Below are positions 42,995 to 43,554 of a DNA stretch of 64,000 bases, piece by piece. The notes below the pieces were generated by a model, which searched no databases, was not told the DNA's origin, and saw nothing but the letters and a program-made list of their open reading frames with translations. Numbering within the stretch: position 1 is the first letter of the stretch; each line of letters starts with the position of its first letter. The stretch comes from Scyliorhinus canicula (taxonomy: Eukaryota): contig NC_052146.1 in the NCBI RefSeq assembly GCF_902713615.1, forward strand, positions 298,476,000 through 298,539,999, written 5' to 3'. The position numbers were made by a program, and so were the translations under genes.

Positions 42995-43292
42995 ACACTG
43001 AGTAAGTTGGCACGGGTGAAGGGCACAGTTTAGTTGTAGGGGCTAGGGCACCTGTAAATAATTGTTAATATTAAACGCACTGTTCCACCTTACTTGTAAT
43101 ACCGTGTGATTGTTCCACAGGCACAGGAATCGTGATGGTGACCGAGTGTCGCTGGGGGTGACGGGTGGTGAAACCTCGGTGCAGGGTGTGCAGTCCCTGC
43201 CCCTACCCCCCTCCCACAGCTAGCCCACGCGGGCACGTGATGGAGTGTCAGTGACGAACTCAGCGGCCACCAAGGTGGATGGTTCAGCTATT

Positions 43293-43368
43293 GCCATGGG
43301 TCAGACTCTCTCTAACGATTCTGAGCTCACAGCTCTTCGCAGAGCGGGCTGTCATCATTCCACATGGC
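43293..43368 (-). ncRNA. candidate box C/D (kink-turn) RNA module in Harbinger element 1
   Basis: ATGATGA (43358-43352) ... CTGA (43304-43301), terminal stem GCCATG(T)GG/CCCATGGC; homologous module in element 2. Confidence 0.55.
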
Positions 43369-43554
43369 ACTGATCACACCCGCTGACACAGCCATCAATG
43401 TTGTGCCATTCCGTCTGTACCCAGTGATAAGCGTCATGTCGAAGTGGAGCAGTGCACACTGAGGGGGGGGGGGGGGGTTGTGGTGGTGGCAGTTGTGTGG
43501 TGACCCTCTGCATGACTAGCGATGCAGGTGGTGGTTTGGTGTTCATCGGGGACG

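Follow-up and report, generated by a model that had tools for sequence, protein, structure and literature searches.

A conserved box C/D-like block in the transposase 3' region of a shark Harbinger lineage, a candidate kink-turn RNA element

The window analysed here is a stretch of 64,000 nucleotides of the Scyliorhinus canicula genome (NCBI RefSeq assembly GCF_902713615.1, contig NC_052146.1, positions 298,476,000 to 298,539,999 of the forward strand), and all positions given below are counted from its first letter. It contains a PIF/Harbinger element, hereafter copy A, with the two genes that define this superfamily: a DDE_Tnp_4 transposase gene (Pfam E-value 2e-40) and a Myb/SANT-like second gene (E-value 1e-9), which are convergent and enclose, on the transposase strand, the block described in this work (Table 1). 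The nearest relatives of the transposase are 'putative nuclease HARBI1' models of Scyliorhinus torazame and S. canicula, which are at most 78% identical, and the homologues of the Myb-like gene are the Scyliorhinus proteins P0121 and P0122. The intron of the latter gene houses six tandem 45-nt repeats (41216-41570), which are removed in an RNA contig joining 40752 to 41579 (GT..AG). The ends of the element were placed at ~40277 and ~45100-45245, where contigs diverge, and no clear terminal inverted repeat emerged from local alignment of the element. A 359-nt inverted repeat (38611-38969 / 47241-47599, 94% complementary) flanks Harbinger on both sides, each of its arms coding for the tail of a retroelement ORF (...CTIESxLSGCITAWYGNCSAQDRK...). 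Further downstream, an intronless ORF of 145 aa (47688-48125, plus strand) encodes an RRM_1 domain (E 4e-26) followed by a Gly/Arg/Tyr-rich tail, as in CIRBP/RBM3, and may be a single-exon gene or a retrocopy.

The distance between the block and the transposase depends on where this gene truly ends. The listed 417-aa transposase ORF runs to 43434 because copy A is without one base after 43760; in the family majority, as seen in RNA-run contigs, one extra C at this site restores the transposase frame. The transposase relatives end in the motif ...AR(D)xL(I/V)xxRF..., whose copy A equivalent, ARDALVAARFTHRM followed by a stop, is read in another frame and terminates at ~43555. Based on this C-terminal motif and on the family contigs, 43434 was rejected as the end of the transposase and the stop placed at ~43555. 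The block therefore begins ~197 nt after the stop and, with the frame corrected, the distance of ~200 nt proposed by the initial annotation is right. Regarding the Myb-like gene, most of the family carries an additional C after 42974 and has the stop at ~43004, and the Myb-like stop agrees with the ends of the annotated Scyliorhinus homologues. Compared with the family majority, copy A hence lacks one C at 42974 and one at 43760, with a shifted Myb-like C-terminus and a false long transposase ORF as outcome. Long poly-G/C and GAG/CCT runs (43459-43476, 40809-40846 and 44710-44750) are the sites of frameshifts and length variants among the copies and are likely slippage hot spots. Since the family consensus genes seem intact, this Harbinger family may be young or active. 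An ATTAAA signal lies downstream of the Myb-like gene, and a sequence scan of the transposase strand between 43555 and 43000 found neither AATAAA nor ATTAAA.

Table 1. Features of the two Harbinger copies and of the C/D-like block (window positions).
Feature	Position	Strand	Remarks
Harbinger transposase gene, copy A (DDE_Tnp_4)	43555..44908	-	true stop ~43555; frameshifts ~44700 and 1-nt deletion after 43760
Myb/SANT-like gene, copy A	40517..42994	+	exon 1 to 40752, GT..AG intron 40753-41578, exon 2 to stop
ATTAAA poly(A) signal, Myb-like gene	43070..43075	+	
C/D-like module, copy A	43293..43368	-	closing helix arms 43368-43360 and 43300-43293 around box C to box D
Box C AUGAUGA	43352..43358	-	next base C lengthens stem II; identical in copy B
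Box D CUGA	43301..43304	-	GU directly before pairs with AC after box C; identical in copy B
Inner hairpin GAGC-loop-GCUC	43323..43335	-	pairs 43335-43332 with 43326-43323; invariant between copies A and B
Wider block best kept among subfamilies	43273..43408		2-6 times flank DNA contig depth at 80% or more likeness
C/D-like module, copy B	50967..51050	+	box C 50981-50987, box D 51036-51039
Decayed transposase, copy B	49889..50745	+	46-54% protein identity to copy A; canonical end ...LSTSRFSE and stop at ~50745

The sequence singled out by the initial annotation corresponds to the minus strand from 43396 to 43278, and direct reading matches the quoted letters exactly. The perfect box C and box D that it had reported stand at 43358-43352 and 43304-43301 and span 58 nt end to end, within a module of ~76 nt overall. 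The order of the boxes is that of box C/D snoRNAs, with RUGAUGA towards the 5' end and CUGA towards the 3' end, in this copy as well as in a second, diverged one (copy B). Likewise, the coordinates bear out the proposed GAC/GTC stem II, the terminal stem in kink-turn register and the GAGC/GCTC hairpin. Indeed, stem II of copy A is made of the pairs G43353-C43304, A43352-U43305 and C43351-G43306, all three invariant in both copies; the 3-nt bulge consists of one spacer base and the first two bases of box C; and the closing helix, in kink-turn register, has one bulged U. The features of a kink-turn (tandem G.A, U.U, Watson-Crick stem II, 3-nt bulge and terminal helix) are all present by sequence, with the right register in both copies. 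An outer helix (GATGG..TCAGC / GCTGA.CCATC), also part of the initial description, exists in copy A; of its 10 pairs, however, copy B retains just 3, and this non-conserved helix was rejected as part of the module. Inside the module, the C'/D' candidates are only degenerate (CUGC/AUGA and UGUGAG / CUGAUG) and show up nowhere but in weak alignments to archaeal sR models. No promoter of its own was seen for the block; sequence reading points to a weak branch-point-like CACUGAC followed by an AG ~80 nt downstream of it.

Copy B provides the main comparison. Its block is 236 nt past the canonical stop of a decayed transposase and hence at the same relative place as in copy A. Both blocks are 77% identical over 60 nt (blastn E about 4e-7 to 4e-6), to be compared with 74% over 156 nt and 68% over 262 nt for the coding stretches that align best, and outside the transposase the block is the only DNA that blastn aligns between the two copies. 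The core of the alignment opens at box C and closes at box D, its two longest identical runs being AUGAUGAC and AGUCUGAC, whereas the adjoining flanks are only ~45-55% identical. These comparisons support the view that, in one shark Harbinger lineage, the block is conserved and apparently does not code for protein.

At the family level, contigs of public DNA runs of the same organism, at least 80% alike, were mapped to 43120-43620. The depth of the element is very high in these runs and peaks at 43273-43408, with 2-6 times the depth of the spacer towards the transposase, exceeding even that of the transposase C-terminal coding part; the block is therefore the part best common to the subfamilies. 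The conserved footprint at this level, of ~135-200 nt, is wider than the C/D module. Contig fragments from other subfamilies keep both boxes and have the same helix-arm changes as copy B, provided that both halves belong together. As copy A is only 2-3% away from its own family majority, identity within the family says by itself little about selection. Among the subfamily variants, 43361 G>U is common (16-20% of depth) and weakens one pair. The guide-like segment adjacent to box D varies at 5 of 13 positions among variants, and a comparison with the element itself gave no match reaching 9 nt, which argues against a conserved guide; a self-targeting guide was dropped, none having been found in the element. 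Of note, an internal-deletion derivative deprived of the block and of the transposase end appears in two RNA runs, whose contigs connect 43198 to 43873 through TGAA.

Loose C/D look-alikes are common, with 16 box C heptamers in the window and two unrelated C/D hits having a stem of at least 4 pairs. By contrast with this loose search, a strict scan, in which the boxes had to come with two additional stem II pairs and with a helix fixed in kink-turn register, retrieved from the window only two sites, copy A (score 8.8) and copy B (50981-51039, plus strand, score 6.8). In 60 shuffled windows, hits with a score of at least 5 came to 0.08 and none of the 60 reached 6. RNAalifold on copies A and B returned a 7-pair closing helix beside the boxes together with the invariant inner hairpin. 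Between the copies, three pairs of this helix are changed on both sides (C-G to G-C, U-A to G-C and G-C to A-U), one is changed on one side and none is broken. This covariation stems from two full sequences, from which the structure itself was derived, and controls were therefore run. When the partners were slid by 1-3 columns, pairing fell to 30-45%, and shuffles of the flank columns reached the observed helix in 1 of 10,000 cases, a figure that includes the selection of copy A in the first reading of the sequence. With copy A fixed and the differences of copy B randomised, P was 0.018-0.067, and the anchored helix of copy B alone beat 98.6% of flank shuffles (P~0.014). Fold z-scores of single sequences were modest for copy A (-1.8 to -2.3) and showed nothing for copy B (+0.6). 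The pairing controls of the closing helix are hence supportive, not conclusive.

No Rfam family matched the whole window at gathering thresholds and nothing relevant was found at E up to 10 over 1.1 kb. With relaxed settings on 101-nt slices, the sole weak matches on the right strand were C/D families, mostly short archaeal ones (13-17 bits for thresholds of 36-54), and these merely restate the boxes. From these Rfam searches, the block is not a captured host snoRNA of a known family. Regarding other Harbingers, five further loci were inspected with blastn and with a covariance model derived from copies A and B: two near-identical copies from fish assemblies (L001 and L003), a metagenome scaffold with little flank (L002), a whale-shark HARBI1-like gene (L004) and a Heptranchias copy (L005). 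The block was found in none of them, and the module, judged from these sequences, is therefore specific to this shark lineage and no general Harbinger trait. The claim of a conserved module in Harbinger stands in this respect for the two diverged shark copies, but does not extend to the other five loci. Block patterns searched in metagenome and prokaryote genome collections gave nothing. The whale-shark gene (L004:4001-5134; 51% identical) is not accompanied by a Myb-like partner within 4 kb, adjoins a GPCR gene and is nearly identical to S. torazame P0016; it looks like a domesticated transposase.

Regarding transcription, the GT..AG joint of the Myb-like gene was seen in one RNA run and real transcripts of the Harbinger family therefore exist. 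RNA contigs from four RNA runs, undirected and without ends, cover the whole element at a depth like that of neighbouring genes. In these four runs, neither an excess of undirected contigs over the block nor a splice joint touching or flanking it was found, so that no intron position is demonstrated for the block. Nothing was found in two very small RNA libraries.

Several explanations of this conservation have to be weighed. It is very improbable that no constraint is involved and that the likeness of the two copies reflects chance or a recent exchange of fragments, the motif being a random look-alike. Such look-alikes do arise at random in their loose form and the comparison is built on two full copies only, but blastn aligns the blocks (E 4e-7 to 4e-6) at equivalent positions of the two copies and leaves their flanks unaligned, the subfamily depth peak falls on the block and the strict motif is absent from the 60 shuffles. 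The block could also be a short coding exon or a small ORF, read on the plus strand as ...GQTLSND... (preceded by a pyrimidine tract and an AG at ~43220) or on the minus strand as ...NDDSPLCEEL and stop, in which the boxes would be codons (Asp/Ser runs, Gln or Val-stop). Variation with 3-nt spacing near box D and splice-like signals were the reasons to test for a hidden exon: five variable sites in CAG ACT CTC TCT AAC GAT are all synonymous in the plus frame (copies A and B and a contig variant), copy B is open throughout in the GQTLSND frame, the box D half gives P = 0.04 in the column-shuffle test, and pyrimidine tracts with AG and donor-like sites surround, on the plus strand, the family-level block of ~200 nt. 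We nevertheless consider this explanation unlikely. Indeed, a profile of the plus-frame peptide run against 1.84 billion proteins retrieved only spurious bacterial repeat proteins; the Myb-like proteins annotated in Scyliorhinus stop ~300 nt before the block, which is itself beyond the poly(A) signal of the Myb-like gene; none of the frames stays open across the block in the two copies alike, and the minus frames all have stops common to both; the A-type family differs in frame by 1 nt from copy B, with no indel variant in the depth data; the box C half, read in its best frame, is outscored by 99.5% of shuffles; and no splice joint touches the block. The column-shuffle coding tests over the block were not significant overall (P 0.55 and 0.24), a test with little power at this length since true transposase coding windows also mostly fail (P 0.03-0.5). 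Protein profile, frames and splice joints lend no support to a coding exon, which is kept as a minor alternative. In-frame splicing from alternative donors of the Myb-like gene into the block does not fit in copy A, and selenocysteine insertion through a SECIS, or read-through, for a shared in-frame UGA was dropped, the helix geometry being missing.

A more serious possibility, although one to which we give clearly less than an even chance, is that the conservation has nothing to do with a kink-turn, the C/D likeness being an inherited coincidence within a DNA site (for the Myb-like protein, the transposase or a host factor) or within an end signal for the convergent transcripts. The block is indeed midway between the convergent genes and near the ATTAAA of the Myb-like gene, with a transposase strand deprived of a canonical signal, and the family footprint of about 135-200 nt is wider than the module. 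Moreover, given 77% identity, the chance that all 11 box bases are kept is about 0.06 and, across some 250,000 windows, a small number of chance C/D look-alikes are expected inside conserved transposon blocks. With a DNA site, however, there would be no reason to expect flanks that, 58 nt apart, remain complementary by changing in pairs, nor a deeply kept core that begins at box C and ends at box D. The repeats or dyads usual in sites of transposases or Myb proteins are also missing.

The explanation that we favour, with a confidence hardly above or below an even chance, is that the block would be a kink-turn-forming RNA element in the 3' region of the transposase, able to bind SNU13 and possibly the full set of C/D proteins. 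According to this model, the block would act as RNA on the transposase strand, the minus strand being presumably transcribed. Some 200 nt after the transposase stop, the closing helix would bring box C and box D together and the RNA would be expected to fold into a C/D-type kink-turn. From what is established for this motif, such a kink-turn should bind SNU13/15.5K and could recruit NOP58, NOP56 and fibrillarin. The resulting RNP might either protect a sno-like RNA of ~76 nt trimmed from the transcript or remain on the transposase 3' region, where it may affect the stability of the 3' end or its localisation. We lean slightly towards a platform or 3'-end protector of this second kind rather than a trimmed sno-like RNA or a classical methylation guide, because the guide-like segments vary and no canonical poly(A) signal occurs on the transposase strand before the 3' end of the opposite gene. 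The initial annotation had gone further by suggesting a third component of the element, either a sno-like RNA or an RNP platform in the 3' UTR. Of this interpretation, the C/D kink-turn sequence and its pairing are upheld, being conserved in two diverged copies, while the guide varies, the outer helix is lost and the module is confined to one lineage. That this lineage would possess a third, RNA component, in the form of a C/D-type RNP on the transposase transcript, giving a sno-like RNA from thousands of loci or a cap or stabiliser for an mRNA without a normal poly(A) signal, is a tentative proposal that we judge rather doubtful at present.

The closest known systems help to situate such an element. 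Vertebrate box C/D snoRNAs (SNORD), assembled in an RNP of SNU13, NOP58, NOP56 and fibrillarin, share with the block RUGAUGA and CUGA, a G-C/A-U/C-G stem II, a helix in kink-turn register, a 3-nt bulge and a size of ~76 nt. In contrast to them, the shark block has no Rfam match, no demonstrated intron, no promoter of its own that could be seen and no conserved guide, its C'/D' boxes are degenerate at best, and it is borne by a DNA transposon in thousands of copies and is known here from sequence alone. Kink-turn modules also occur in longer RNAs, such as the U4 5' stem-loop, the autoregulatory site of ribosomal-protein L30 and sno-lncRNA/SPA, and a kink-turn in a longer Pol II transcript could be a protein platform or an exonuclease block. 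The position of the shark block, in a 3' region where no poly(A) signal is close by, fits with these cases, which are however host genes with demonstrated RNPs, the RNP of the block being only predicted. SnoRNA retrocopies (snoRTs) and small RNAs borne by repeats are likewise examples of sno-like sequences multiplied genome-wide by a mobile element. SnoRTs are nonetheless host snoRNAs copied by the LINE machinery, whereas the shark module sits at a fixed internal position of a cut-and-paste element, and no host snoRNA family in Rfam corresponds to it. Finally, PIF/Harbinger transposons such as Harbinger3_DR and the teleost families have the same DDE_Tnp_4 transposase and convergent Myb/SANT-like gene, as in L001 and L003, but the lineages compared here (L001-L005) are without such a block. 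These transposons are described as two-protein systems, with no RNA component in the teleost Harbinger paper (PMC9179366), and the literature searched for Harbinger together with snoRNA describes no RNA component either.

If the block were neither to give rise to a small RNA nor to be bound, the convergent transposon genes would still enclose a strongly conserved and unexplained cis element. Were the proposal of a third component true, the block would be a cis element required for Harbinger expression and the first RNA-level component for the PIF/Harbinger superfamily, otherwise understood as two-protein systems, and it would reveal a new route by which a DNA transposon borrows the host snoRNP machinery. 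As the family is very abundant and transcribed, it could moreover add a large pool of SNU13-binding sites or of orphan sno-like RNAs to shark cells.
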